DNA of 64,000 nucleotides from Dicyema japonicum (taxonomy: Eukaryota; Animalia; Dicyemida): positions 1,311,528 to 1,375,527 of the forward strand of contig RDEW01000003.1 of NCBI GenBank assembly GCA_011109175.1, in the 5' to 3' direction. Shown here one piece after another: positions 1,023-29,976 of the stretch; position 1 is the stretch's first letter, and each line of letters opens with the position of its first letter. Both the position numbers and the translations under genes were made by a program. The notes under the pieces were generated by a model, which was not told the origin of the DNA, did not search any database, and was given only the letters and a program-made list of their open reading frames with translations.

Positions 1023-3210
1023 TTAGGCAAAATGTCTTTGAATGAGGTTTTCTTCACGTGAAGATAACTCAGAGTTAATTAGGTTCTCTTTTAATAAATT
1101 TTGCTTGAATTGTTGGTTTTCCTTTTCAAATTCTAGTTTTTTGTCTATCGATTGTAACATTTTTCTAATAGCTAAATTTCCGTCTTGTAAATGTGATCTT
1201 TGGGTGAATAATGGGCTTTCATTGCGCTGTGGCATTTGTTCGGAAGCCAGTCTTTCATTTAATGATTTCCACATTTTTCCTAAGTTGGAATTTCTTTTAT
1301 ATGAAAATGGTATTCGATTAGAAAATTGACTCTCTTCAATTTGAGGTATTTGTTCGAAAACCAGTTTCTGATTTAGTGAGTTTAACGTTTTTCTAAGATC
1401 AGAAATTCCGTTTTGCGAATATGTCCTTTGTGCGAACGATAAACTTTCATCACGTTGTGGTATTCGTTCGGAAGCCAGTCTTTCATTTAGTGAACGTAAC
1501 ATTCTTTTGATGTCTGAATTTTCGTCTTGCAAATATGGTCTTTGATTGAACAATGGACTTTCGTCACGTTGTGGTATTTGTTCGGAAACCAGTCTTTCAT
1601 TTAGTGATTCTAACATATTTTTAATATCTGAATTTTTGTTATGCGAATACGGTCTGCGATTGAACAATGGACTTTCGTCACGTGGTAGTGTTTGCTCTGA
1701 AGCCAGTCTTTCATTTAGTGAGTTTAACGTTCTTCTGAGATCAGAAATTCCGTCTTGCAAATATGGTCTTCGGTTGAACAATGGACTTTGGTCACGTTCA
1801 AGTATTCGTTCTGAAGCAATCCTTTCATTTAATGATTCCAACATATTTCTAATGTCAGAACTTTCGTCTTGCAAATATGGTCTTCGATTGAACAATGGAC
1901 TTTCGTCTCGTTGGAATATTTGTTTTGAAGCCAGTCTTTCATTTAGTGAACGTAAAACTCTTTTGATGTCAGAAATTTCGTTCTGCGAATATGGTATTAG
2001 GTTGAACAATGGAGCTTCATCATGTTGTAGCATTTGCTCGAAAGTTAGTCTCCTATTTTGTGAGTTCAGCATTTGTCTGATATTATAAATTTTATCTTGC
2101 GGAAATGATCTTCGGTTAGAGATTGGGTTTCCTTTTTCAAACAACAGCATTCGAGCAATAGCGAGCTTTTCGTTGAGAGAGTCTAACATTTTTCTGATGT
2201 CCAAATTTCTGTTCCTTTGATTAAAATTATGATTTTCATTTTTTTGGTCATATTTTTTGATTTCTATCTGCTGTGTTTTTTTTCTATTCAATTTTATCGT
2301 TTCTGTAACTTGCTTTCGTTTTGGTGGAGAGTTTTCCCCCTCGTCGGGATAACTTTCGTTTAATGACGGTTGTGTTTTAACGGAACCTGATTTTTCTGTT
2401 TCTGTAACTTGTTTAGGTGTGACGAATGAGCTTTTTTCCTTATCAAATAATTTTCGTTCATCGGGAGATGTTTTATTTGTCGACTGTGATGTTAATTCTA
2501 TGTCTGATTTTTCTGTTTCTATAACTTGTTTAGGCGTGACAGCTGGTCCTTCTTTATTATGTCGTTGATGTTCGTCAGAAGATTTTTGATTAGGTGACTG
2601 TGTCGCTATTTTGATGTTTGATTTTTCTNCGTTGATGTTCGTCAGAAGATTTTTGGTTAGGTGACTGTGTCGCTATTTTGATGTTTGAATTTTCTGGTTT
2701 GTTAACTTGCGTAGGAAGGATGGATGTCTTTCCTTTATTATTGAGCAATCTCGGTTCATTGAGATATTTGTTAGTCGATTTTGCGGTGTTTGATTGTTCT
2801 GTTTCTGTTTCTTGTTTAGGAGGGACGGAAATACTTTCGCTTTTGGTAAACTTTTTTAAATGATCGGGAGACTTTTTATTTGTTAATTGGTTTGTTTTCT
2901 CGATTAACAAATTTTCCGTTCCTAGGACTTGCTGAGGTGTGACTGATGAAGTTTCTTCTTTGTTGCCTTGCATGCTTTCGAGGGTTACCCTTTCTTCTAT
3001 TGGGGAATTTTGCTTGAAGATTGGTCTTTCTTTTTTAAATAGATTTTGTTTGGGGGATAGCCCTTCTAATTGAAGATTTTGTTCATTAACAGTGGCTTTA
3101 AGTTGACTCGCTATATTTTTCAATTCATTTAAGCGCGTGAGTCGAAATTGCAAGGTTGAAAATATCAAAACACAAGTAAGACAATAATTCATCAGTCTAG
3201 TAGCGAGCAT
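1023..3210 (-). CDS. Intronless putative secreted repeat protein (about 700 aa), split by a single-N assembly junction at 2629
   Basis: Hydrophobic N-terminus. The frame of ORF 1023-2291 stays open upstream to the N at 2629, where about 65 nt is duplicated on both sides. Contains 39-aa and 38-aa repeat arrays. The likely start is the second Met (3192). Confidence 0.75.
1130..2230 (-). repeat. Coding tandem repeat, 114 nt / 38 aa, about 9-10 copies
   Basis: RDESPLFNRRPYLQDESSDIRNMLESLNERIASERILE-type units; aacaatggacttt recurs every 114 nt. Confidence 0.9.
2300..2945 (-). repeat. Coding degenerate tandem repeat, about 117 nt / 39 aa (S/T/K/E-rich)
   Basis: TPKQVTETEKS / TPKQVIETEKS / PPKQETETEQS units; gtttagg at 2411 and 2528, 117 nt apart. 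Confidence 0.7.
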
Positions 3211-3213
3211 AAA

Positions 3214-3221
3214 CTTATATA
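3214..3221 (-). promoter_or_regulatory. TATA box (TATATAAG)
   Basis: 29 nt upstream of ATG 3192; identical motif and spacing in the paralog (171 vs ATG 142). Confidence 0.55.
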
Positions 3222-3899
3222 CTAATAAAATCGGTATTTTGCATTATTCTAATCTGATTAAATTTAGCACTTCCGCTAACTAAAGCAGTGGGTATTTAAA
3301 TGTTAATCTTAAAAATTGAAAAACATTGAGTGTTATTATTGTTCTCTCAACCGGATGGCGCGATGTAATGAGTGCCGGGCAAGAGGCTGATGGCCCGTAG
3401 TTCGAGCTCGCAGCTACAGTTTCGATTGAAGGTTCCAGGCATCTACTATATTTTGGCTAGATGAGTAACGTCATCAGTAGATATTTCACTGCGGAACTGG
3501 ATCGTCTTTAAAGGACATACAAGCAACAAAGAGTAAAAAAGAAGTGAGGAGGATTCCTTGGTTCTCCCTCAACGATTAGTTATCATAACTGTTCTGTACT
3601 AAAATAGTGAGTAACTAATATGGCTTTTCGTAAAAGTACAGTTTTTTTCTCCCAACTGTTTTATACACGTACCAGAGTAATCCAAACAAAACGTTGTGTG
3701 GCTCAAGTTTTTTGGAAAACTAATTACTTATTTATGCTATTAAAAATCAATTTATTGCGGGAAAAGCTAGCAAATGGTGATATAGCGGCCGCCCTGACTG
3801 AGTGGTATTCCATGAAAAATTAAGTCTTTTTTAATATCAGTAAAGATTACTTCTCAGTGTTAATTCGTTAGTAGTACCTCATTAGCGACCTCTCTGATG

Positions 3900-4093
3900 T
3901 TAGTAGAAACCCCTGAGGCTAAATTCAAAAAGAAATATTACTATGAATCAAGTCTGTTCAAATATATCCACAATTCCCGTCTTAGCAAATATTCGTTGTA
4001 CCATTCTTCTGTCACCGAATGTTCTAGAAATTGTCTTGCTAATTGGCATTCTAAGCACGAAAAAATGGTAAGGAAAATCAAAAAATGCATCAT
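3900..4093 (-). CDS. 56-aa putative secreted peptide, copy A (one 23-nt intron, 3919-3941)
   Basis: MMHFLIFLTIFSCLECQLARQFLEHSVTEEWYNEYLLRRELWIYLNRLDSY|LRGFY*. Signal-peptide-like N-terminus, GT-AG microintron, upstream TATA box and an intact paralog at 16193. Confidence 0.7.
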
Positions 4094-4114
4094 TAAAATA
4101 TTACGGATAATTTC

Positions 4115-4122
4115 TTTATATA
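4115..4122 (-). promoter_or_regulatory. TATA box (TATATAAA)
   Basis: 29 nt upstream of ATG 4093; conserved in the paralog. Confidence 0.55.
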
Positions 4123-4409
4123 TTGGTAAGCTATTGATTTTCGTAAATTATTGTGATTCGCTCACATTCGTGAAATTTAAATTTTTAAAATGATTGGAAT
4201 ATAGTATTAAAGATTTTTTGTTTATTCTGAATTTTTGGAATTCATTAATTTCAAGATTTTTGATAGTAAGAATAGTAACCAATTTGAAAATCAATTGACC
4301 CTTACAATGAATATTTAGCAAATAATTATTTTAACATTTTATGAATATCAACAACATTCAAAAATAATTTATATATTTTTTATTAACTAATAATTTTTTT
4401 AGAAATTAA

Positions 4410-5170
4410 AAGTTACGGAGCTTGAATGGCCATACTGTTTTTTTCTGTAGATAGCTATCAAGATACGATCTAGAAGCCATCCAGTCTCACGTGGATTCTT
4501 GGTCACTCCTTGGATTATTGAGATGATCCGAAGAACTAGATCGTCTACTCGTGGGTCAAGGATTCTTGAGGTCTAAACAGAAAATGGAAAAACAAGATAC
4601 TGATATTGCGACCTCACTGCAAAGGGCACAGCTTACGGATGACCTTAGTCGTTATGAAGTTTCTGTACCCTGCTTTCAGGAAACAAAAGTAAAAAAGGAC
4701 ACTTGAAGTCGTGGGATCAGAGTTATACTGCTAGAACCAGAATGCAGACATTATGGACAGGGATTTGCTATGGACAGGGAGTTGATCAAGACTATTCTAA
4801 ATCATGTTCCCGAAGCATTTGCGTGATGGCCTCTGAAAATGAACGAACAAAAGACGGAGGTCACAACTGTTAAAAGAGAAACTCTATTGACATTAGAAAT
4901 GGAGAACAAAGAGTCGGCTCACTACTCGGTGATTGGGAAGATGTTCAGCGAAGGAAAATGTTATCGACTCTTGCACTTAAAGACTAAAGTCTACTAGAGT
5001 CTCAACCCCCATATAGGTGCGTTTATACGATGCATTTGTTCTGCCTGTTTTGCTATACAACTCAGGAACGTGGGGTTTGAATCAAAATTGTACTGAAAAT
5101 CTGCTTTTCACAGAAAACAACAGAGATCTCCATTGAATACCTATCCGAAGGTGATCAGCAACCAGAAGAC
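4410..5170 (+). mobile_element. RTE-like LINE relic (5' leader, APE, and post-RT fragments with internal deletions)
   Basis: CFQETK, HYGQGFA and RLYDAFVLPVLLYNSGTWG motifs with stops; leader homologous to 10430-10630 on the - strand. Confidence 0.75.
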
Positions 5171-5869
5171 TAAATTAGTGTTGGTAGAAGACATATATTC
5201 TTTTTAGGATTAAGGACGTAATGAAGATATTTTTTGTTTAGTTATAATCACTGTTTTGGCATATTTAGTGTTCAGCATTTTAGAGGTCGTACAATTAAGT
5301 TAGGTGAATGTCTGGGGTTCCGTTGACGGTTTTCTAATAATACAGATGACCATACCTGATCCTCAGTCTTCCATCCGATTAGACATAAGACATCAAAGCA
5401 ATGATCGAGTTGAGAAATTCGGCAACCATGTGTCCAGTGAATGAGAATTCCTAACAGTACTGCACGTGATAGGAAAGGCTTCCGTTTGATATGCCAGTTC
5501 TTCCATATATTTGAGATCCTTCATTATGTGCTTCATTGACTGGTATCTCATCTGCAATCTCTCCATATCCTAATACGCCTAATTGCTTAATTAAATCACA
5601 GTGACTAGTCTAAATCCCACACTCATTGAAAGGTCTCCAAGCGAACTGGTTACAAATGGCGATACATGGAGTCCAAATCACTGTTGGTGTTAAATAATCA
5701 TACTGGTTCTTTCTTCTCCTTTGCCACTTGTAAGGAGTGCCTTAACTGATAGAGGTCTTCATTTCCAAACATAGATGCTATAAAACAGTTCTCGTTTTTA
5801 AAATATAAAAAATCAAATATACAAAAGTATTACAATTTAAACAGGCCATTATTAGACCAGAGATTGCTA

Positions 5870-6270
5870 ATTACTATATCATAAAGAGCGTATGGAATTA
5901 TGACAGGGAAAAACAAGTTGAAATTATTCCTTCAGCAGAATATAAAGGAGTTGTCGTTATTACATTCTCGACCTCGGCCTATTCTTTCCTGCTAATATAA
6001 ATTATCTTGCTGGTCTTTATGATTATTCACTACTAGCAATGTCTCTTCTGATCAGTTTAGTGAGAAATTGATGGATATGGGCTTTCCTACAAACCATGTA
6101 CATAAACTGTGTTCTGTTTTTAATGAATTGGTTCTCTACCTTATCAGGTCAATAATATTTAAGGGTTCCCATTCAAAATGGCTTCCAATTAATTTTCTCA
6201 GGTTTTAGATAAGTTCATCAATAGACATCACGAGATATTTTACCAAGGTCCTCGATATCTTTAGGTAAAA
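5870..6270 (+). pseudogene. Possible COMMD4-like gene relic
   Basis: Exon NVSSDQFSEKLMDMGFPTNHVHKLCSVFNE resembles COMMD4 [30 protein letters not shown]; upstream frame is broken. Confidence 0.3.
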
Positions 6271-6479
6271 AAGTCATCTTTTTTTAAATCTTATATAAAT
6301 TGATTTTAAGGGGTCCTATGAGTAAGTGGAACATTTTGCCAAAATCCTCGACATCTTTAGGTAAAAAAGTTATCTTTTTTAATATTTTTATTTAACTTTA
6401 AATGAAAGATTTATTTTCAAAAGGAAAAAAAAATTAATTATTAAATCACATTTAATCTATTTATATCTTCATTATTTAT

Positions 6480-7260
6480 GTTGTTGAAAATTTCTAATTC
6501 CAACATTTTTTTGTTAATATTTTGGTCCTATATGGAACATGCAGCAATTTATCCGTGCAATTGGAAATGACTTTTGAAAAGAGTTTATTGCTCTTTTTTC
6601 AAAATCTGAAAAAATAACTCTCAGTTCTTAATCCGGAATGAGACGTTTAATTATTAGAAGCATTGTGTCAGATTCATTTTTAGTTTTTGATTTTAAAAGA
6701 CAGATTTGATTATTCTGAATGCTTAAACAAGCATTTAAGAAAATCGATCCGTTTATGAATTAATTCATTTTTAGTTGGTGAATAATATTAACAGTTTATT
6801 TGAATTCACTATATGAAGTAAGATTCGAATTTATACTTCCACTTTCATTAAAAACATTAACATTTGATTACCAATTCTATTGTAATATCAAAAAGTAATA
6901 TAGACATTAAAATCAACGTTCTCCAATCCACTTTATGGCTTTTCTGTGAAAACAATGTTTTAATAAATTTAAATATAATTGTATTACAAGGCCTTCGCCA
7001 TTCTGTCGTCCAAGTTATTTTCGAAATGATGTTTAATTGATATTAATTCCATATCTTAAAAAAAATTTATTAAAAGTTATTTCTGTTCTAGTACAAATTC
7101 TATTTCATCTGGAAGTGTATAAAATATAATTCAAGAAACCTGATCTTCTCACATGGCTCGAAAATATTTGTCTCGTGTTTTTTAATATATCAGAGGCATA
7201 ATTTTCCAAATTATATATTCTTTCACTCAATTAACGTAATACAACAATTTTTTTAAAACA
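6480..7260 (-). mobile_element. Mutator-like (MULE) transposase pseudogene
   Basis: Reverse strand reads VIFSDFEKRAINSFQKSFPIARINCCMFH, the MULE DFE...FP...CxFH signature, with stops. Confidence 0.85.
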
Positions 7261-7261
7261 A

Positions 7262-7767
7262 NNNNNNNNNNNNNNNNNNNNNNNNNNNNNNNNNNNNNNN
7301 NNNNNNNNNNNNNNNNNNNNNNNNNNNNNNNNNNNNNNNNNNNNNNNNNNNNNNNNNNNNNNNNNNNNNNNNNNNNNNNNNNNNNNNNNNNNNNNNNNNN
7401 NNNNNNNNNNNNNNNNNNNNNNNNNNNNNNNNNNNNNNNNNNNNNNNNNNNNNNNNNNNNNNNNNNNNNNNNNNNNNNNNNNNNNNNNNNNNNNNNNNNN
7501 NNNNNNNNNNNNNNNNNNNNNNNNNNNNNNNNNNNNNNNNNNNNNNNNNNNNNNNNNNNNNNNNNNNNNNNNNNNNNNNNNNNNNNNNNNNNNNNNNNNN
7601 NNNNNNNNNNNNNNNNNNNNNNNNNNNNNNNNNNNNNNNNNNNNNNNNNNNNNNNNNNNNNNNNNNNNNNNNNNNNNNNNNNNNNNNNNNNNNNNNNNNN
7701 NNNNNNNNNNNNNNNNNNNNNNNNNNNNNNNNNNNNNNNNNNNNNNNNNNNNNNNNNNNNNNNNNNN
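7262..7767. other. Assembly gap (N run)
   Basis: Run of N. Confidence 1.
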
Positions 7768-8447
7768 GGATCTTTGTTTGTTAGTTATTTTAATGTTTGG
7801 CCGGTTTCCTTCACTTGAAGGGACTGGAGGATAAAAAATCATAATTTTCTTACGTACCCTTGCTTTTGAGACAACTGATCGACAAGCATAAAAGTCTGTC
7901 TTTGATCAAAATATCTCCGAATACAGTAAGATCTCCAGTTCTGTCCTCAAAAGATGATGAAAGAATGTCCATTCAGTATTAACATGGATTCTATGTAGCA
8001 CACGAAACCCCAAGGAAAGTAAGAAAAGGGAGGTCGAAAAGATAAACTCGTCCAAGTTCATCCAAAATTGGACACGTGTGAATCGAGTCAAGAACATATG
8101 TATATGGCACATCCTTAATTCCAAAAGTTCGTGCATCCTGAAGTTCCATTAGTTCATTGTCCACCCTCATAAGAAAAAATGGACAGGGGGATACAGCTAT
8201 CTTGAAAAATGCAAGAGGAGATAACAGACTAATTAGAGATTCGTAACCACCTCAACTTCAGCACGTGCAGATCCTAACTCAGACTTTATTGCAAGCGACC
8301 AGTCAAATTAATATAAGAAAAGAAGACCCAAGGTAGAGTTAGTCGATACATCTCCAACCCAATAACTTCATGGGGGAGAAGTAAATGCAAAACAGAGTAG
8401 AATTTTTTTCATAAAACTAACAGCTAAATTTCGCAAAAATAAAATAT

Positions 8448-9478
8448 TCAATTCCATTTGATTAGACCTTCCTCGAAAAACAGAGCATAAATCTTCATGG
8501 CAATGTCCTCCCCCAACCTCCTCTTACTTTCAAAAATTCCAGCCATACGTCGTATTTGAATATCCCCCAAAGTCCTCACAGCATCCGTTCTGGAGCCAGC
8601 CAAAGTCATCTAAACTATTACTTGACTTCTTACAGCTTCAATGAGAGATTTCATGGTGGGGTAAGCAGAGATCACACAAGCGGCAATATCGTCGGAAATC
8701 CCGGGGATCTGCTGTAGTATCTTATAGTAAGCATTAGCCAGATTGGAAGACAGGGGAGGCAAATTATCGTTACAACTCCGCTGAATGTAAAAATCGGAAG
8801 AAGTTCTGATTATTTCAAGTTTTTTCCTAAAGAATCAAATTTCCTTCACTTTGCAGGGGCCTCAGCTATTGATTTTGTTATTTGCCAAGTCAGGACCGCT
8901 GCCTCTGAATTGGAATTAGCGAAGTGGAAGGAGACAGTAGGATTTCCTAGTAGCAACAAATCGAGGGAATGCTAGGTTGTTAAAAATTAAAACTTGTTGC
9001 GCCTCAGTAAGCAAAGTAGCTTTCTTTTGATTTCTAGCAAATTTATATTTAATTTAAACTTTATAAAAATTATAATAATTTTAAATAATTCATATAATTT
9101 TTGAATTTCACAAATATCTGGTTGTGCTGTGGTCATTTTATTTAAATTCATAAAAACAAGTAAATATCCTTCATTTTTGTATTCAAATTCGATTTCCTAA
9201 AATCATGATAAGAAATAATCACGTTTAGTCTGTAATCGACGCCAATCGGTATTTTTCTATTCCATTGGATAATCTCAAATTTGCTAGGATTTTCTAATGG
9301 GACTGTGACTATGTTGCATGTGGTCATCTCTTGTTTAATAAATGTGTCTAATGGAGCATTCAAGTTGTCCGATATTAGTAGCTGCATGTACTAAATTGAA
9401 TCTTTATCTTACTTTGTGGCACTGTTTTATATTTTCGCTCATTCGTTTCTCGGTTTCTAATTGTTTGTTGAGTGACAT
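8448..9478 (-). CDS. EME1: Crossover junction endonuclease subunit EME1 (spliced, compact)
   Basis: Spliced translation includes ITKSIAEAPAK, KILQQIPGISDDIAACVISAYPT and LGDIQIRRMAGIFESKRRLGEDIAMKIY, matching EME1 FTKAVAEAPFK / [20 protein letters not shown] / [28 protein letters not shown]. Confidence 0.85.
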
Positions 9479-9639
9479 AACAAAGTAAAGCCGGTTATTT
9501 ATTTTTCGGTTATTTATTTTAAGATTTAAATTAGGAATATATTATTTTAAAAAATATATATTAGTCGTTTCTATAATTCTGACTTAAAAATATATTTTTT
9601 TAAATTTCCAAGTATTTTTCTACCCCTTCACTTTTTTGG

Positions 9640-10000
9640 ATGTATGGGTGACGTCCCTCTACTAATGTTCGACTCACGGTCGGATGGTTCTAATGCACCA
9701 ACCTTACTTTCAATGGCAGAGGTCTCAATGACTGATTGAGAGGCAGTTACTTTGTCAGGACTTGGCTAAGTACAAAAAATCGATATGCTGTCTTTAAGAA
9801 ACGAAAGTCAAAGAAGGCCTCGATTATTGGAACGAAGATTACAGACTAATTTACTTCTGACTGTATACACTATTGAAGGGGTACGCGATGGGTAAGGACT
9901 TACTTAATGGACTATACCGTTTCATGATAATCAGTGACAGAATATGCGTTATTCAATTACGCATCAGGAAATTCATGTCCATTGTCAACTTATACGCTCA
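9640..10000 (+). mobile_element. RTE-like APE relic
   Basis: Frameshifted ETKVKEG, GYAMG and ISDRICVIQL segments paralogous to the 453-830 ORF. Confidence 0.7.
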
Positions 10001-10429
10001 GTTGTCTTGTTTTGAAGAATTGAAAGAGCTTGACGTACTCTAAGACAATCTCGCCTGATTCTTTGTGTGCTGGATTCCTCCACACCTTTTTCCATTGCGG
10101 GTAGCTGGAGTGTTGCTGAATGATACGATAGTAAACAATGACTATTCTGAACTTGAAAATTGCTGTACCAATTCAGAAAGGATACAAACAAGGACGATTG
10201 AAACCATATGCCATGTAGTCCTATTAAACACACTATGAAAGGTCCTTGTCTTAATTGCTCTCAGCTTTATAACTTGTGATTTATGTAGTATCCTTTTTCA
10301 ATGGTCGTAACCCGGTCTGGGAACCTACGTTTGTTATACATACTTTCCAAAAAATTTGGTCGCTTCAATCTCGGAATCAGTTCATGCTTCTAAGCAGTCG
10401 AGGATCAGAAGAGAAGGAAGTGCCGAAGC

Positions 10430-10630
10430 ATTTTAGAAGATCAGTTGTTAGTCCATTTGCTGTTGAGACGTCAGAAATTCTTCGCTAATAAGCGTACGAT
10501 CTATTCCGTCGGATCGACTCAATAATCCAAATAGTCACCAAGGATCCATGTGAGGCTGGATGGTTTCGAGAGCGAATCTCGAGCATTATTGTAAAAGGAA
10601 CAAGCCCGGCAATTCAAGCTCCCTTGTAAG
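10430..10630 (-). mobile_element. RTE-like 5' leader relic
   Basis: Reverse complement aligns with 4417-4580 (ggagcttgaat...ccatccag..tcac.tggat.cttggt.act..ttggattattgag). Confidence 0.65.
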
Positions 10631-10779
10631 TATTTTTTGATAGAATCATATTTTTGATTAAAAAAATACATTTTTAGAAATTTTTAAAAAATTTGACAAA
10701 ACGTGAATTTTTTACTTCAATGACAAAAATTGCCCTAATAATATATAATTTATGTATGTAGTACGTTACAATGATGTTT

Positions 10780-11200
10780 TAGTTTTTGACGCTATCCTAG
10801 GGCTTGAACTATTTCCCAATCCTATCCCTTTCGTATTTGCCAAAGTAATGGAGGTTTTATATTTCTTCAATTTGAACTAATTTAGTTGTTCATCAAAAGT
10901 TCCAAGAGGAACTGAAGCTAGATAAAGCAGAGGACTTAAATGCTTTTCGCAAATTCGCATTATAGAGATATCTCACGGAAAGAATTGTCTATACATTTCC
11001 ATAAGCAATGAGAAGATAACTCTTTCAGTTGAGTGTTATGCAGAGATTCATTGAATACTAAGAGAATTTGATGTTCTCTTTTACCCATACATAATTGTAA
11101 ACAGGATATCTTGTGGAATTTTGTTTAGCAGATTAATTTATTCTTTCCAAATGGCTAATTGCCCGAAACCTGAGATAGTAATGTAATTCGATTAAACCAG
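10780..11200 (-). mobile_element. MULE transposase relic
   Basis: Degenerate LLYLASVP (LAFVP motif) and CLWKCI segments on the reverse strand. Confidence 0.5.
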
Positions 11201-11279
11201 GTATTTATTTTGCTTTACGATGGATGAGAGCCAATACGCACCTTTTACTCATAACCATGGACTGTTGATGGCCTATTAA

Positions 11280-11540
11280 GCACTCTCCATAGTAATTACA
11301 ATCCATGTGCAGCTCGAGAAACTAGTACCAAAACAAACTTCCTCAACTTGCCCCTATCATACACAAGCTCACGTAGTTTACCGAGATCATCTCCCTCTCT
11401 TAAGCGTCTCCCGATCTTTTGAAGGTGTAAGTCGAGGACCATAAGGAGAGTGGTGCTCAATCGTCCGTGGAATTGGGGATCTTGAGGTGATAAGTCCTCC
11501 ATAGCCACGTTAGTTAGGGCATCCAGTGTGTTTTCAGAAA
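11280..11540 (-). mobile_element. RTE-like LINE 3' relic
   Basis: FGRFL, GRLSTTLLMVL and LRELVYDRGKLR resemble the RTE C-terminus (GRPxTT...DRxxWR). Confidence 0.6.
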
Positions 11541-11704
11541 GCGTCCAAAGACATAGCGAAATAAATATTTAATTTTTGTTCCATAAATTAATTAAAATAT
11601 TATTTAATTTAAAGTATGAATTATTTATTAATAATAATAAAATTATTTTGTAATTTTAAAATATTAATATTTTGTATTCTTAGTTGTCCAATACAAAACG
11701 TTTA

Positions 11705-12879
11705 ATGCCGAAGACTAAAAGAACACAGTTGTTGATTGAAAGCTTTATTTTAGGAAATTCATCCACGAATTACAAGAAGAGTTAGACAGAGAAGCTGAGA
11801 GTAAATTACAAAGAGAAGAGGCCAACGCTGAGCGTGCACCAAAACCTGAAACAAATCCAAAACAAGACAATAAGAAGAGCTTTTGGGGTCAGAGGGAGGA
11901 AAAGGGCGCTGATTTAAAAGAATGTGAAGATCTTATGAATCAATTTCTGATTGACCTTAAGCCCGAACAACGAAAATTTGAATATCAACACTATGATTTT
12001 ATTCCGATAAAGTATTTAAATTTTTGTTTTTTATTTTAAATTAAAAATTTTTTATTATTCAATAGTAAAAATTATGTCATTATTATTTATTTTTTGTCTT
12101 TACATTAACTAAATCGATTAAACTAAAAAATAGAATTTTAATTTTTTTATTATTTTTTTAATTTTTAATAAATTTTTAAATAAAGTTTTTAGTAGTGTTG
12201 ATGTTCCCGATTCCTCAAAAGCAGATGCCTCTCTTTTTGGAGGTTATTATTTTGCGTATAATTTGCTAGAGATGGTTCTCCCGTCCTGCTACTATAGTGG
12301 GAATATAAATTGATGTTCCCGATTCCTCAAAAGCAGATGCCTCTCTTTTTGGAGGTTATTATTTTGCGTATAATTTGCTAGAGATGGTTCTCCCGTCCTG
12401 CTACTATAGTGGGAATATAAAAGAGAAGGTTTTGTTTTTTTTTTAAATTTGTAGATTCCTCCTTTTCGGTTAGGCCGGTTCAGTGACTATGCATTGGTGA
12501 TGTTGTTCTATCTGAACACACAAAACGAATTGCACGTGAAAATCACCATTGAGCTGTTGGTATTGGTGGTTACTCTTCAGTTACCGTCGTAATTGGAGGT
12601 ACCATAAACTACAGCAAATTTGGATCACTGGAGTGACCCCGGAAACCCAGAATATGATCCAAAATTAAGTCAAGGGATCAACTTAGTGCTGTGTTTGCGT
12701 ATATTGACCCCACTGATATGAAAAGGGTAGAGTTTCCGTCTTCTGACTTTTCGTAGTATATGAAGGAGATCTTTATTGGTCCAGATACTCTGTCTTGGGT
12801 TGAATACGCGGAATTGCTTAAAGATAAGGGACCGTCGGATCTGGCGGATGCGACTGCTGCTTTGCTTAGAAGTCTTTGA
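11705..12879 (+). CDS. CNOT2: CCR4-NOT subunit NOT2-like (NOT2/3/5 box), with a 112-nt tandem duplication and one frame break as assembled
   Basis: Spliced FRLGRFSDYALVMLFYLNTQNELHVKITIELYRRNWRYHKLQQIWIT...AVFAYIDPTDMKR matches the CNOT2 NOT box (KLGRYGEDLLFYLYY...ELFNRDWRYHKEERVWIT...YYFFD). Confidence 0.75.
12198..12421 (+). repeat. Exact 112-nt tandem duplication inside CNOT2 (likely assembly artefact)
   Basis: 12198-12309 is identical to 12310-12421. Confidence 0.85.
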
Positions 12880-13999
12880 TTTTTTGGTTTTTTCTGTTTT
12901 TTCTGTTTTCAATGTATATTTGTTGATTTATTATTTTTTATCAGTCCTACTAGGTCACTTTCTGCGTACTTCAATTGTTATCGAATTGATGTCTTTCGTG
13001 GAGATCGACGACTACTATACTCATAGTTCTGAATAATGACCTCTCACAACTGAGCCTAACGACGTAGTGATGAATTACTGGTGGTGGCGTCAATCCAAGA
13101 AGCTGATGTCGGGCTTCCGGAGACCGTTTGCAAGAACGTTCTTCACATGTTGAGAAAAGAGACCAGGGGTCCAAGCTCACTCTCAGTATGGAAACTGAAT
13201 AGACACCTCCAAGATACAATACCGGAACCCTCTGGATTGTTCAGGCACTTAGGAAACTCCACAATCCCGCCACTGCTGATTTTGAGTAATTTTTAAATGT
13301 TAATGGATATATGCACAAGAAGACTTGAATGCTGTGCGTCCAGGGTCACGTTCAAGGGTTCTCTCTAGCCCAGTTGTTTGCATATATGCGTGGATATTCT
13401 TATCCACTTCCAACTGCCTCATGAACTCCCTGCTGAAATTTGTAGTGGTACACCACATAAGGTAACATGTTGATTATCTTCACGATCGACTTATTCCCAA
13501 TTTAGAACCAGGCGGTATTTAAACACTCAAATTGGAAGATCCGTCTCATATTGAGGAAATGAAGGAACCTACGTCATCCATCAATACTGAACACTAAAGA
13601 ATCATAATAACAACTATCCGATAGTGAAGGATCTGAGAGATCTCCAAGTTCTTTCAATTTGGTTAACAGAATTTGAATCTGAATTTTTCGTGCATCCGAA
13701 AATTACTTTCTTGAGGAATTTGGGCTTATATGTTTCCAGAATCCACCATTTCGCCCAAAGCACACAAGGAAGCTGTCAATAGCTTTTATCCATCCATTTC
13801 TTCCTCGAATCCCAGTAGCTTCTCCAATTAATCTCGCTATCAGGAGAGGCAATGATCCATCAATTATGTTGATAGAGATAATAATTTCTGTCTCAACGTT
13901 ACTAGCACGGTACGTGAACTGGTTCAAGAGTCTTTCGTTTATCTTCCATTTGAGTTTAAAACAGACAAGTATCGGTGTGGTAGCACGGTAGAATGTTAT

Positions 14000-14330
14000 G
14001 GAGATCAGACCCTTTCTTGACGAAGCGCAAAACGACTCCCAAGACATAAAGCAATTAACAAAATTTTAAAGCGAGCCGTATAGTCTGCGGGATACTCCTC
14101 CATAATGGAACCCAGTGACTTAAACGGGGGAGACGAAAAGCAACAGGACGGAATTACAATCTTTCCGCTTAAGGAGAGGAAACCGTTAGTCTGGGATACA
14201 ACATGTGTCAACTCTGTCATCAACCAATACAAAGGTACTTTCTGCTGCAGAGAACGCAGAGAGTGCTAAAGAAAATGAGTATAGATGACCCCCCGACATA
14301 TATACCTTCTACGAGATTGCTGTAAAGATA
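14000..14330 (+). mobile_element. CRE-like (restriction-like endonuclease) non-LTR retrotransposon 3' relic
   Basis: RHKAINKILKRAV*SAGYSSIMEPSDLNGGDEKQQDGITIFPLKERKPLVWDTTCVNS matches the RH..N...EP.GL...DGKRPDG.T..PW..GK.LVWD.TC RLE signature. Confidence 0.75.
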
Positions 14331-14902
14331 ACCAGAGCAATAAGCATACTGATGGTAATTTGAACCATTTGGTATTAATTTCAATATTCAATTTCTTTAT
14401 TTGTAATTTAATTTCGTCCAAATAAAAATCGCCTGGAAAAGTTCATCTATGAAATGCGGCTAAAGTAGTTCCACACGTACACGTGATTAGGAAACTTGCA
14501 AAATAACTCGCAAAACAACTGAAAATAAAATCAACATAATTATGAAAATATATTTTTAGCCAGAAAAGAATTCTTTATATTTGAACAACCACCTGAAGGA
14601 GTAGTTGGCTAACCACAGCAACACATTACTCTCTGAATTTTCAGAGTACATGGATTTGTCAGTTACCCTTCATAGAGGGTCCACAAAAGCCTCTAGAAGT
14701 AACCGATTGTAACCTAACTGTAGCGTTAGTATTACTTACAATTATAGTAGCAGTCGGAGGAAAGTGAAGGCCTTCGAGAACTCCTCAGCCATCGCATAAT
14801 CCAATAAGTCATTAAATCCTATAAATATAATTAAGTTTCAATTTAAAATTAAAGTCCACAAAGGAAAATTCACACGTGGAAAAAATCAAATTCTGATTTT
14901 TC

Positions 14903-16024
14903 TATGTACCCCACCCCAATAGAGAAGTGCCCCAAATATAGAGGGTATATATAATTCTTACATTTTTAAACTATTATTTGTATTTTTAATAACAAAATAT
15001 GTTGTTTCGATTAAAAAAAGAATTTAATTTATTTTGTGTGAAATAATCAGTAATTTTGAATCCAGTGTAATTCTTATTTCTTAGAATTTTTGAAATTTTT
15101 AGGAATTCGTATTATTCTTTGAGCCCGCATCTTGGCGATTTAAATTCCCCGATAACAAGGGGCTTTAATTTCTCACTTTCAAGACTGCAGCATGAAAGAA
15201 CTGAAACTCGTTCTTTGCTTTTCGTTTTACCAAAACAATCATCATTTGAAGAGACAAATAATTATGAATTTTTTTTAACAAAAAGAGAGGTTTCGTCGCT
15301 GTTAAAAATATCTTTTTTCTCGTATTTATCAAATAAATTGTCGTAATCGTTGAAAAAATCTTCGATTTTATTTTTGTCACATGAGTTCTTTTCACCCAAA
15401 ATTACTTTGAACAATAATTCATGGCGCTTTTTAAATCGATCCAACCATCCATTTGATGCTTTGAAATCATTCAAGATTAGCTGCAATTTTTTTTGCAATA
15501 GTTTTGAGAAGAAATCCTGAAACTGAAATACCATCTCTCTCAAATTTTTAAAGACTTCGAATCCTAAGCCATCAATTCGAATAGAAAGATCTGATTCGAA
15601 CTTCTTAGATGAGAGTTCATCAGAGCATATTTGTGTTATTGATACCCCTTTTCCGATTTTTTTTAATTCGTGACACAGTTCCTTTTCCAATATTGTATAA
15701 TTGACAAATTTTTCTTTCTGCCATATTTTCTTTCATTAAAGAATCGATTTCAGGTGGCGACTAAGGTTCGCAGGCATGCTTAAAATATTTTAAAATTAAT
15801 TAAATAAATATAAAAATGAATTAATAAATTTTAATATTATTGATTGAAAAAGTGCCCCAATAAGCGGGGTTTTGTATTTTAAATTTAGGCTTCATATTGG
15901 TCAAAAAATTAATATTTATTAAAAAATCGTTATTATTATTCAAAATAATATTTATTGAAAAAATCGCCCCCAAAACAGAGGGTGCCCCAAGGCCGGGGTT
16001 TTATTGGGGCGGAGTCGTACTGTA
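14903..16024 (-). mobile_element. Tigger/pogo-type DNA transposon relic
   Basis: ORF 15262-15690 has FKASNGWLDRFKKRH (CENP-B-type HTH) and DIFNSDETSLF. The right end reads TA-CAGTACGACTCC on the - strand, with repeated GTGCCCCAA subterminal motifs. Confidence 0.85.
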
Positions 16025-16163
16025 AATGTTAAAATATTGATTTGATCTTTATGCAGAACAGACTACTTCTGTAAAGCGTACATAGATTATCCCAGAAATT
16101 TAATATTCATGAAATTTTATACAAATCATATCAACTTACAGTAATCAATACGCAAGTTACTAA

Positions 16164-16171
16164 TATATAAA
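16164..16171 (+). promoter_or_regulatory. TATA box (TATATAAA)
   Basis: 29 nt upstream of ATG 16193. Confidence 0.55.
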
Positions 16172-16192
16172 GAAATTATCCGTAATATTTTA

Positions 16193-16386
16193 ATGATGCA
16201 TTTTTTGATTTTCCTTACCATTTTGTCGTGCTTAGAATGCCAAGTAGCAAGACAATTTCTAGGGGATTCGGTGACAGAAGAAAAGTACAACGAATATTTG
16301 CTAAGACAAGAATTGTGGCTATTTTTGAACAGACTTGATTCATAGTAATATTTATTTTTGAATTTAGCCTCAGGGGTTTCTACTAA
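16193..16386 (+). CDS. 56-aa putative secreted peptide, copy B (one 23-nt intron, 16345-16367)
   Basis: MMHFLIFLTILSCLECQVARQFLGDSVTEEKYNEYLLRQELWLFLNRLDSY|LRGFY*; same length and structure as copy A. Confidence 0.7.
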
Positions 16387-16759
16387 CATCAGAGAGGTCG
16401 CTAATGAAGTACTACTAACGGATTAACACTGAGAACTAATCTTTGCTGATATTAATAAAAACTTAATTTTTCTTACAAAGTGAAAGTGCCCAGTCAAACC
16501 TCAAAGCATCAACACAAGACCAATTATGTATGTGAAAGGCTAACCCCCGCAAAGAAAATACGTGGACAACTAATTGAAATATTTTTAAATTTAAAATTTT
16601 TTGAGTCAAACGTTTTATGAATAATCACGGAACGGAGGACAGTTTTCATTTGTCTGTGTTTATTCTAGAATCCAGTGCAGTGAAATCTATCAGCATGATT
16701 AGATGAGTGGGAGATGAGCGTAAGTGGGAGATGAGCGAAATCACATGTAGGAAAACGTC

Positions 16760-17380
16760 ACTAATTTTTGAAAGGACTAGTTTTCCTAATAGTTTTTTTC
16801 ATCGAACATAGGATCGAGACAGGCTTCAATGAAAGTGGATTGCTCTCCTGTCCCCCAAGTGTCAGAATTGTTTGCATATAAAAATGTTTCCATATAGACG
16901 GAAGTATGTTTTTGTTAAAATATATGTTGAATAGCGGGGTTAGGACACCAGTACTCAAAACTCGCAGATTTTTTAGTAAGAAGATCGAAATCCCGTTAGG
17001 CTGTTTTTTATTTCGGTTTTTTTAACGAATGCAAGGACGGATGACGTTTTACGGTTTTTGTGGAGATTTTAACATAGAATTTAACAGACTATTGTAAATC
17101 CTGCAATTTGTAATCTTTGTCATACATGTTTCTGCCAGCTTTAACGCGTTTGGATTTCCACGCTGATAATTTCTACGGCCTCATTTATCGTACGTATTTG
17201 TGAGGGGAATTCTTTGGCCATTTCTATGTCGACGAGTTACTGAAGCCAAGTCAAACAACCTTCCTATAGTTTTTGAATCTTTCATTTCAACTTGCTATGT
17301 CAGGCGTCTTGAAAATCTTCTTAATATAAAAAGGATGGGACTTTGGTCGCTGGAAAAACCATAATTTACATTCCATGAAG
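16760..17380 (-). mobile_element. LINE reverse transcriptase N-terminal relic (I/Jockey-like)
   Basis: LTPLFN...ILPSIWK...SLKPVSILCSMKK resembles RT domain 0-2 motifs (P..WK...YRPISLL). Confidence 0.65.
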
Positions 17381-18626
17381 CAAGTCCCCTAAATAGCTTT
17401 AATTTTTCAGCATTAATTTTTTTTGCTCACCGTAAATTAAAAAAATTTAAATATTTTTTTACCAATATCTTTATATTAAAATAACCGCTAAATAGCTTTA
17501 ATTTTTCAGCATTAATTTTTTTTGCTCACCGTAAATTAAAAAAATTTAAATATTTTTTTACCAATATCTTTATATTAAAATAAAAAAATATTACTAACAA
17601 ATATTAATTTAAACACCAAACAAAAATTTCTCATTTTGATTGGTACCATTCCGATTTGAATGACACTGTCTCATTAAGAATAACACTATTCTCATATTGA
17701 ATGACACTGTCCCATTTTGAATGATACTATTCTCATTTTGATTGTCATTATTTTCATATTGAATGAGAAATGGTTTAGATGTGATGGATTTGTTTTCACT
17801 CACAAATATGAAAATATTAATTAGGAAAAATGTTTTTAGTTAAACGGTGGATTGCTTTAATATGAAAGTGAATTTCTGAATATATTTCAAAAGTTCCCGT
17901 ATTTCCCCAAAAATTTAAACACATTTTTTTTCTTTTAAGTATATACTACCTCCGAAAAAATAGTTTGATCTGTCTGATAGTTTGAACGATCAAAGTAACT
18001 TTCGAAATAATTTGGATTATTTTAATATGGATCATCGNCGGTGGATTGCTTTAATGTGAAAGTGAATTTCTGAAAATATCCCAAAAGTTCCCGTATTTCC
18101 CCAAGAATTTAAACACATTTTTTTAAAGTATATACTACCTCCGAAAAAATAGATTGATCTGTCTGATAGTTTGAGAGATCCAAGTAACCTTCGAAATAAA
18201 TTGGATTATTTTAATATGGATCATCGACGATGTTAAGCAAATTGCTCAAGATTTTGAGGGTCCTAGGGCTGACTAGAAATTACTCAAGTTTATTTACATT
18301 ATTTAAAAGACTATGTAGCTTATTTAACACCTCAGAGTACATGGATACGTCAGTTAACCTCCGGAATGAGTCCACAGTTCCTCAAGAAATAACCGATTGT
18401 AACCGGACTGTACTCTTAGTATTACTTACAATTATAATGAATTTCAGTTGTATTATTTCTCACTTTTGAAAAAAGTTTTTGACCACGTGCTTTTTAGTTT
18501 TATGTGGGACATTTTTATTTTGATTTAAAGTACTCAAAAGGATAGAAACAAGCAATTTAATATTGCCACTGTAAGAAGAGTGTTTATTTGTCAGTATAAA
18601 GAAATTAAGGTTTTTTTTACACACGT

Positions 18627-29191: not shown

Positions 29192-29976
29192 ATGTCATCT
29201 GAGTACAGTAATGATTAAAACTAAGGAAATTAAAAAAGAAGTTGAAAATTAAAATAAACGACGAGGAGAATAATTTCATCGAAAATTACGATTCCTCACT
29301 CCGTCTTTCCCCCAATATTCCTTTAGACACAATCCGCACCTTTATAAATCCCCCCTCAGAAGCGTGCTATCGGGAATGGCTCATTTATAACCGTAAAGTT
29401 TTGAATAATTTTAGTGTTCACTTTCTGCGAGAACATTGGCCTAATTTTCAACCCAATTTCTATTTTCTGTGAGGGACACTGCGAGAATATGCCGGCTTCT
29501 CCCACGTTCTCATTCTTAAGCTATAATAGCCGGAATTATCAATGGGTGGATTCAAAAGGGAAGCTAAAAAGCTACTCAGCCTTCAAGTATGTCATTATGG
29601 CTCTGGACATGATCGACAATTCCATGGAAGACCCCTCCTTCGAATCAGGTTTCACTATTCCCTCATTTCAGAGACAAACTTGAGCTCATTTCACACCAAG
29701 ATCGCCAGTTTGTTCGAACTGCTCTTTCGGGTCCTCTCGCACATTCTTTTCGTCCATTACCAGAAGTTGACCGAAATGGACCTCAACGGTTACTGTAATC
29801 TGATCTTCGTCCATTTCATGCTGTTTGTGGAACACTTCAATCTCGTTGGGGCCGATGAGTGCTCCATTCTAAGCAAAAGTCTCTCAAAGTTCTTAAATGA
29901 AGGCCAAAAGCCTGTTGAGAGCATCATGACTCTTGAGTCTGATAATTATAATTACTCAATCAATGTGAATGATTGA
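29192..29976 (+). CDS. MOB2: MOB kinase activator, MOB2-like (four 22-24 nt introns)
   Basis: Spliced REWLIYN, YQWVDSKGKLKSYSAFKYV and LLFRVLSHILFVHYQKLTEMDLNGYCNLIFVHFMLFVEHFNLV match MOB2 (YYWYDERGKKVKCTAPQYV...LFHVLAHIYWAHF...HLNTLYVHFILFAREFNLL). Confidence 0.85.

Follow-up and report, generated by a model that had tools for sequence, protein, structure and literature searches.

The 64,000-nucleotide (nt) window analysed here (Dicyema japonicum, GenBank assembly GCA_011109175.1, contig RDEW01000003.1, positions 1,311,528 to 1,375,527 of the forward strand) carries two very small paralogous genes, A at 3900-4093 on the minus strand and B at 16193-16386 on the plus strand, which are both intact and share the same layout (Table 1). 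They lie in the two arms of an inverted repeat (3814-4129 and 16157-16472), which the repeat search delimited as 316 nt at 94% identity. Weaker similarity continues for about 60 nt further upstream of the arms, giving a blastn total of 371-377 nt at 89%. On the minus strand, A opens with ATG ATG (first ATG at 4093), and after 50 codons its frame meets a TAG. The G of this stop doubles as the start of a 23-nt GT...AG stretch (3941-3919). When this stretch is excised, six extra codons (Y-L-R-G-F-Y) and a TAA follow, ending at 3900. Read in the same way, B starts from the ATG at 16193, has its candidate intron at 16345-16367 and ends with a stop at 16386. The sole entry at A in the default listing of open reading frames (ORFs) was an antisense ORF of 98 amino acids (aa) at 3897-4193 on the plus strand; the sense gene was missing because its 50-aa ORF falls below the 60-aa cut-off. 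The first-pass annotation of the window had described an intact paralogous pair at these positions and with this layout, represented in the ORF track only by antisense shadows, and both descriptions are borne out by the sequence, the inverted arms and the codon table.

Three queries were run against the genome (67,542,437 bases in 377 contigs): the 341-nt unit itself, a profile built from the exon-1 products, and the 21-mer that is invariant where exon 1 ends. Each led to the same six places on two scaffolds, comprising four intact copies (A to D), one 3' fragment (E) and one broken copy (F). C and D lie 50-60 kb upstream of the window pair on the same scaffold, and the four intact copies span at most 75 kb. 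C and D share 73-79% DNA identity with A and B, and 55-58% protein identity with A. The small multigene family suspected at first reading has thus gained two further intact paralogs. E starts right after a single-N junction as a 92% tandem duplicate of D. Rather than a gene of its own, it is probably D duplicated through a contig overlap or a second haplotype. F is a pseudogene, as its start codon and exon-2 stop are lost and it carries indels in the signal region and a 4-nt deletion near the end of exon 1. One further profile match, on scaffold C2, was marginal (E = 0.95 over 24 residues) and was taken as chance. A and B are not mis-scaffolded alleles, being only 94% identical over 316 nt against a heterozygosity of about 1.2%, and having unrelated flanks. 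Nor is the unit a transposable-element consensus, since it occurs at six places on two scaffolds only; the adjoining dispersed repeats, each present in at least 40 copies, do not contain it.

No relative was detectable outside this genome. The searches covered the exon-1 products, exon 2 with its six codons being too short to search. Pfam gave no family at E up to 10 for any of the four copies, a profile word search of 5.8 billion protein clusters gave no relative at E ≤ 1, and HMMER gave no match at E ≤ 0.001 among 1.84 billion representatives. The best score in the ESM Atlas was 0.88, under the usable level. Neither the 50-aa sense product nor the 98-aa antisense product had an exact match on record in public assemblies, although this genome's own records may lie outside the coverage of that look-up. 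As far as Pfam, the word search and HMMER reach, the early proposal of a lineage-specific family holds, and we consider it probable that this is a lineage-specific family of secreted peptides.

Several properties of the four intact copies suggest that the unit is coding. The sense frame is the only frame without stops in all of them; no other reading frame is open in all four, and none has a clearly lower ratio of nonsynonymous to synonymous substitution rates (dN/dS). The antisense ORF (92-98 aa among copies) was rejected as a real gene, being broken in C. When the observed substitutions were placed at random, the sense frame survived in 0.38 of the trials for A-B and in 0.05-0.24 for B-C, B-D and C-D. 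By our own estimate, for a tree on which some 47 substitutions lie outside the A/B pair, the joint chance of an open frame in both C and D is about 0.02-0.09. Indels are absent from the 169 coding nt, with at least three in the intron and 3' untranslated region (UTR). Furthermore, conservation is strongly segmented along the unit. Nucleotide identity in the distant pairs was 75-90% in codons 1-16, 53-67% in codons 17-31, 80-95% in codons 32-50 and 74-89% in exon 2; it was 61-72% from the TATA-like box to the ATG, 61-83% in the intron and 58-74% in the 3' UTR, and fell to a near-random 30-56% in the 60 nt on either side of the unit. A TATCCG block downstream of the TATA-like box is present in all four intact paralogs.

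The predicted product, of 55-56 residues, has a signal-like N-terminus. In all four copies, residues 4-14 form an uncharged hydrophobic h-region that is followed by L-(E/D)-(C/S), and variability starts with the next residue. By inspection, C or S stands at -1 and L at -3, there is no basic n-region, and the hydrophobic character of residues 2-14 survives nine replacements. Residues 1-16 would fit a cleaved signal peptide by this inspection. The first-pass description of a signal-peptide-like N-terminus is supported, as judged by eye, in all four copies. AlphaFold2, run on the exon-1 alignment, predicted helices at residues 2-24 and 29-49 with a mean predicted local distance difference test (pLDDT) score of 77. 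The predicted mature peptide has about 40 residues, is free of cysteine and is rich in Y, W, F and L. The C-terminal segment E-Y-x-x-Y-L-L-R-x-E-L ... N-R-L-D-S is kept among the paralogs, and exon 2 would add Y-L-(R/G)-G-F-(Y/F). There is no conserved dibasic site (residues 38-39 are RR, RQ, RK or RN) and no amidation signal (the peptide ends in G-F-Y or G-F-F). A cationic amphipathic antimicrobial peptide was considered and rejected, as the net charge of residues 17-56 is about -1 in A, -1 in B, +1 in C and -2 in D.

The candidate intron keeps its GT and AG in all six copies. It comes in two lengths, 23 nt (A, B and C) and 25 nt (D, E and F), and this difference of 2 nt is restricted to the intron; copies A to E all retain the exon-2 frame and stop. 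Exon 1 ends at the putative splice junction with ...GATTCATA. Exon 2 is better conserved than the sequence on either side of it, and of its six variable sites, four fall on third codon positions once the intron is removed (binomial P about 0.1). Longer introns from the same GT (29 and 48-52 nt) were discarded, because they either lead to an immediate stop or lack the AG in C. Introns average 38 bp in the D. japonicum assembly as published (67.5 Mb in 377 scaffolds, GC content 36.7%; PMC6736024). According to a 2026 survey, the species is the only non-myxozoan animal with introns so short, and its 20-27-nt classes are well populated (PMC13644364). The window itself offers a control, a Mob1/phocein-like gene (PF03637) at about 29280-29976 on the plus strand. 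Its Pfam match falls into two pieces in different frames, which are parted by a 23-nt GT...AG stretch at 29649-29671 whose removal restores the frame, and the gene has a probable 22-nt intron at 29393-29414 as well. A 23-nt intron is therefore normal in this genome, and the one proposed for A and B at first reading is plausible. Retention would leave the in-frame TAG and a protein six residues shorter, with nothing else disrupted. ORF integrity cannot prove splicing, because retention merely swaps the last six residues for a stop. Overall, we lean towards the candidate intron being spliced.

Considering these features together, we think that A and B are probably two of four intact paralogs in a lineage-specific micro-gene family for exported helical peptides in D. 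japonicum. Transcription, splicing, secretion and any extracellular role are what we infer from sequence here. Each gene would be a self-contained unit of about 320 bp. A TATA-like block about 29 nt before the ATG would be followed by exon 1 (49-50 codons), a GT-AG micro-intron of 23 or 25 nt starting inside the next codon, six further codons with a stop, and about 85 nt of 3' UTR that include an AATAAA-type signal. The first 16 residues would act as a cleavable signal peptide, and a peptide of about 40 residues would be exported. Its first 15 or so residues may be free to vary between paralogs, and the kept C-terminal amphipathic helix would be the likely interaction surface.

The differences between A and B were then compared codon by codon. 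Eight codons differ (11 F/L, 18 L/V, 24 E/G, 25 H/D, 31 W/K, 39 R/Q, 43 I/L and 44 Y/F), each with a change of residue, and a single base differs between the introns, as the first-pass annotation had reported; exon 2 shows no difference at all. The annotation is also right that no codon differs only synonymously. Nevertheless, two of the 11 base changes within these codons are synonymous steps along Nei-Gojobori paths, in the two-hit codons 24 and 39. With two synonymous (Sd) and nine nonsynonymous (Nd) differences, the proportions of synonymous and nonsynonymous differences (pS and pN) were 0.069 and 0.074, respectively, and dN/dS was 1.08 (Nei-Gojobori). The non-coding part of the unit differs at 8 of 147 nt (0.054) versus 11 of 169 coding nt, so replacement divergence equals the local neutral proxy. 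Across all pairs of the four intact paralogs, dN/dS was 0.66-1.17 by the same method. The replacement-only pattern, from which diversifying peptides had been proposed, does not show diversifying selection. More generally, the observation that all differences are nonsynonymous carries almost no statistical weight in a 50-codon pair, and here it coexists with a dN/dS of about 1.

Diversifying selection on the family is possible. In this explanation, the mature peptide would be the target of positive selection, as it is in effectors that interact with a host or in peptides for mating and recognition, and the eight-of-eight pattern between A and B would be adaptive. By segment, pN/pS was 0.41 in the signal region, 1.72 in residues 17-31 (pN 0.45) and 0.83 in residues 32-50, where both rates are low; the value for residues 17-31 rests on about nine synonymous sites and on non-independent pairwise sums, and is not significant. 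Nucleotide identity in codons 17-31 does not exceed that of the intron and UTRs, and seven of the 11 changed bases between A and B fall into three clusters of adjacent bases. When the changes were polarised with C and D as outgroups, the A lineage received seven of the eight coding changes that could be assigned, versus one of three in the non-coding parts, which is suggestive of coding acceleration on this lineage (one-sided Fisher P about 0.15). Against this stand the near-equality of pN and non-coding divergence between A and B and the family-wide ratios given above. Relaxed constraint on a spacer-like segment would yield the same picture. The A-B differences appear to fit near-neutral divergence after duplication, mostly on the A lineage, as well as they fit positive selection, and we regard adaptive diversification as unlikely, though worth keeping in view.

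A second alternative holds that the unit is non-coding, either a low-copy repeat or a small non-coding RNA gene, with a 50-codon frame that is open by chance and descent. Several observations weigh against a coding, spliced gene and in part favour this alternative. The sense-frame dN/dS is close to 1 overall and no lower than in the other frames, and the differences are spread evenly across codon positions with no third-position excess. Substitutions placed at random give replacements that are just as conservative (BLOSUM P 0.18-0.74), and the protein searches found no relatives. With the TATA-like box this near to the ATG, the leader would measure just a few nt. The open ORF does not need the intron, and comparative support for splicing is weak. 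The 316-nt high-identity unit shared by A and B coincides almost exactly with the putative transcript, and A/B identity stops at the unit edges, a coincidence that gene conversion or nearby transposon insertions could produce. The 3' UTR holds well-kept TACTAAC-type blocks, and five copies share the last 20 nt of exon 1 without a single difference, even at synonymous sites, which may point to an additional constraint on the nucleotide sequence or to gene conversion. On the other side, the chance that the frame would also stay open in C and D is low, indels avoid the ORF, its two outer segments show higher conservation than the non-coding sequence around them, the hydrophobic stretch persists through its replacements, and the off-cluster copy F has decayed. 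The two bodies of evidence can be reconciled because constraint is strongly heterogeneous along the gene. We therefore judge, from the comparison of the copies, that the unit is quite likely a real coding gene family, and that a wholly non-coding unit is improbable.

Signs of a conserved RNA were sought as well. Rfam gave no match in the window, the RNAalifold covariation term was -0.06 kcal/mol, and the z-scores of single-sequence folds ranged from -0.25 to -1.9. In A (window 3855-3960, minus strand), the conserved TACTAAC-GAATTAA block of the 3' UTR could pair with the invariant end of exon 1 and its 5' splice site, so that the intron and exon 2 would be enclosed; the corresponding stretches of B, C and D allow the same pairing. 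Such a helix could be a cause of the conserved synonymous sites. A conserved RNA structure, this helix included, was rejected, as there is no covariation and the z-scores are non-significant.

A third alternative accepts the gene and places its product elsewhere, as a small membrane-anchored or intracellular micro-protein whose N-terminal stretch is an anchor. It would suit the AlphaFold2 model, in which residues 2-24 form one continuous helix, and the n-region without a positive charge. Nevertheless, the uncharged stretch of only about 11-13 residues (positions 4-14) is short for spanning a bilayer, and the L-(E/D)-(C/S) sequence, a plausible -3/-1 cleavage motif, follows it in all four paralogs with the variable region starting exactly at the next residue. 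We give this explanation little credence.

An exported peptide family invites comparison with better-known systems. Conotoxin and amphibian skin-peptide precursors combine a conserved signal with a hypervariable mature part. The Dicyema family resembles them in its clustered small paralogs, its constrained putative signal segment and the hypervariable residues after the predicted cleavage site, and its duplicates and pseudogene suggest birth-and-death turnover of the same kind. Unlike these precursors, it has no cysteine framework, acidic propeptide or conserved dibasic site, its C-terminal half is conserved, its net charge of about -2 to +1 is non-cationic, and the searches gave no sequence or profile similarity to anything. 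Schistosome micro-exon genes encode small secreted parasite proteins that are taxonomically restricted, and many of their exons are symmetric micro-exons. They share with the present family the orphan status, the parasitic owner, the signal-like N-terminus, the very small product, the clustered paralogs and the ease with which automatic annotation misses them. They differ in that the genes described here have two exons, the small element is the intron (23-25 nt), and alternative exon use is not in evidence. As in neuropeptide and peptide-hormone precursors, a predicted signal is followed by a short product whose conserved C-terminal segment could be the active part; unlike in such precursors, there are no conserved mono- or dibasic sites and no C-terminal Gly for amidation.

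Dicyemids are parasites of about 30 cells with a published set of 5,012 genes, and they are thought to sense population density via chemical signals of unknown nature. To our knowledge, they have no nervous system. Exported peptides of this kind would thus be concrete candidates for density signalling. The family could represent the parasite's own extracellular signals, for example a long-sought density cue that turns asexual nematogens to the sexual, rhombogen mode of reproduction in the octopus renal sac, or host-directed effectors, with the C-terminal helix binding a receptor and the first 15 residues tuned by positive selection. We offer this as a long shot whose only tie is that these are orphan peptides of the secreted type. 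Annotation based on ORFs and homology is blind to genes that are only about 260 nt long and interrupted by 23-nt introns, and a clustered, lineage-specific family of exported peptides would add to the largely uncharted dicyemid secretome. The family is unannotated and without known relatives, an instance of an under-annotated secretome and not a new kind of system. For the dicyemid reproductive switch, no candidate chemical is known (PMC6854800).

Table 1 Copies of the micro-gene family, parts of copies A and B, and neighbouring features. Positions refer to the window unless a scaffold is named.
Feature	Position	Strand	Basis or remark
Copy A	3900-4093	-	Intact
Copy B	16193-16386	+	Intact
Copy C	C223, ~1,252,754	+	Intact
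Copy D	C223, ~1,262,635	+	Intact
Copy E	383 bp after D		3' fragment
Copy F	Scaffold C323		Broken
A, whole conserved unit (promoter-proximal block to homology end just past the poly(A) signal)	3814-4184	-	Repeat arm, plus a less similar blastn extension as far as 4184
A, TATA-like box (TATATAAAG), starting 29 nt before the first ATG	4114-4122	-	Conserved in alignments; putative promoter
A, exon 1 (50 codons and first 2 nt of a split Tyr codon)	3942-4093	-	Sole frame open in all four paralogs
A, codons 1-16, predicted signal peptide	4046-4093	-	Hydrophobic core, then L at -3, E/D at -2, C/S at -1; cleavage site predicted by inspection
A, codons 17-31, hypervariable start of predicted mature peptide	4001-4045	-	Nucleotide identity 53-67% among distant paralogs; pN/pS 1.72
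A, candidate 23-nt GT...AG micro-intron	3919-3941	-	GT and AG in all six copies
A, exon 2 coding part (completes Tyr, then L-R-G-F-Y and TAA)	3900-3918	-	Frame and stop position kept in A to E
A, ATTAAA poly(A)-signal variant, 16 nt before homology end	3830-3835	-	Read from sequence; putative function
B, whole conserved unit	16096-16472	+	Repeat arm and blastn
B, TATA-like box	16164-16172	+	Sequence and alignment
B, exon 1	16193-16344	+	Sequence and alignment
B, candidate 23-nt intron	16345-16367	+	One base different from A
B, exon 2 coding part and stop	16368-16386	+	Identical to A
B, AATAAA poly(A) signal, 13 nt before homology end	16454-16459	+	Read from sequence
Assembly gap of 506 N between A and B, touching neither	7262-7767		3.1 kb from A, 8.3 kb from B
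pogo/Tc5-like transposon fragment, ending ~50 nt upstream of unit B	15000-16043		At least 40 copies, 79-93% identity, many scaffolds

With regard to the assembly, A lies in an uninterrupted piece at 2630-7261 and B in another at 7768-18037. Because the gap separates these pieces, the relative orientation of A and B and their 12-kb spacing rest on the scaffold join. In a 100-kb stretch, nearly every single-N junction has a tandem duplicate next to it, 200-620 bp long and 87-98% identical (window 2563-2695; C223:1,246,082-1,246,486, 1,262,073-1,262,642, 1,262,765-1,263,526, 1,266,494-1,267,093 and others). These duplicates look like unmerged contig overlaps or haplotype ends, and such unmerged ends give rise to false tandem repeats and to partial gene copies such as fragment E.

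The surroundings of the units are rich in repeats. The pogo/Tc5-like fragment next to B contains an HTH_Tnp_Tc5 domain within an ORF at 15265-15690 on the minus strand, and its copies suggest a fairly recent burst of the element. Dispersed repeats lie 160 and 420 nt from A (window 3333-3653 and 4605-5167), and another directly follows D, E and F (C223:1,262,875-1,263,145); every one of these families has at least 40 copies. The adjoining repeats account for the sharp limits of homology around the unit, which is itself no transposable element. A second inverted pair, of 138 nt at 76% identity, lies between A and B at 4458-4595 and 10445-10582 and is probably another repeat family. Directly downstream of A, on the same strand, a long open frame (1023-2291 and 2590-3210, minus strand) contains at least nine tandem repeats of 114 nt (38 aa) with the motif R-D-E-S-P-L-F-N-R-R-P-Y ... 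S-L-N-E-R-L-A-S-E. It gave no convincing Pfam family, as CSN5_C scored 29.8 bits with no single domain stretch passing. A as a 5' exon of this downstream gene was rejected, since B, C and D have no such homology downstream. The Mob1/phocein-like gene of the window is divergent from a second copy on scaffold C124.

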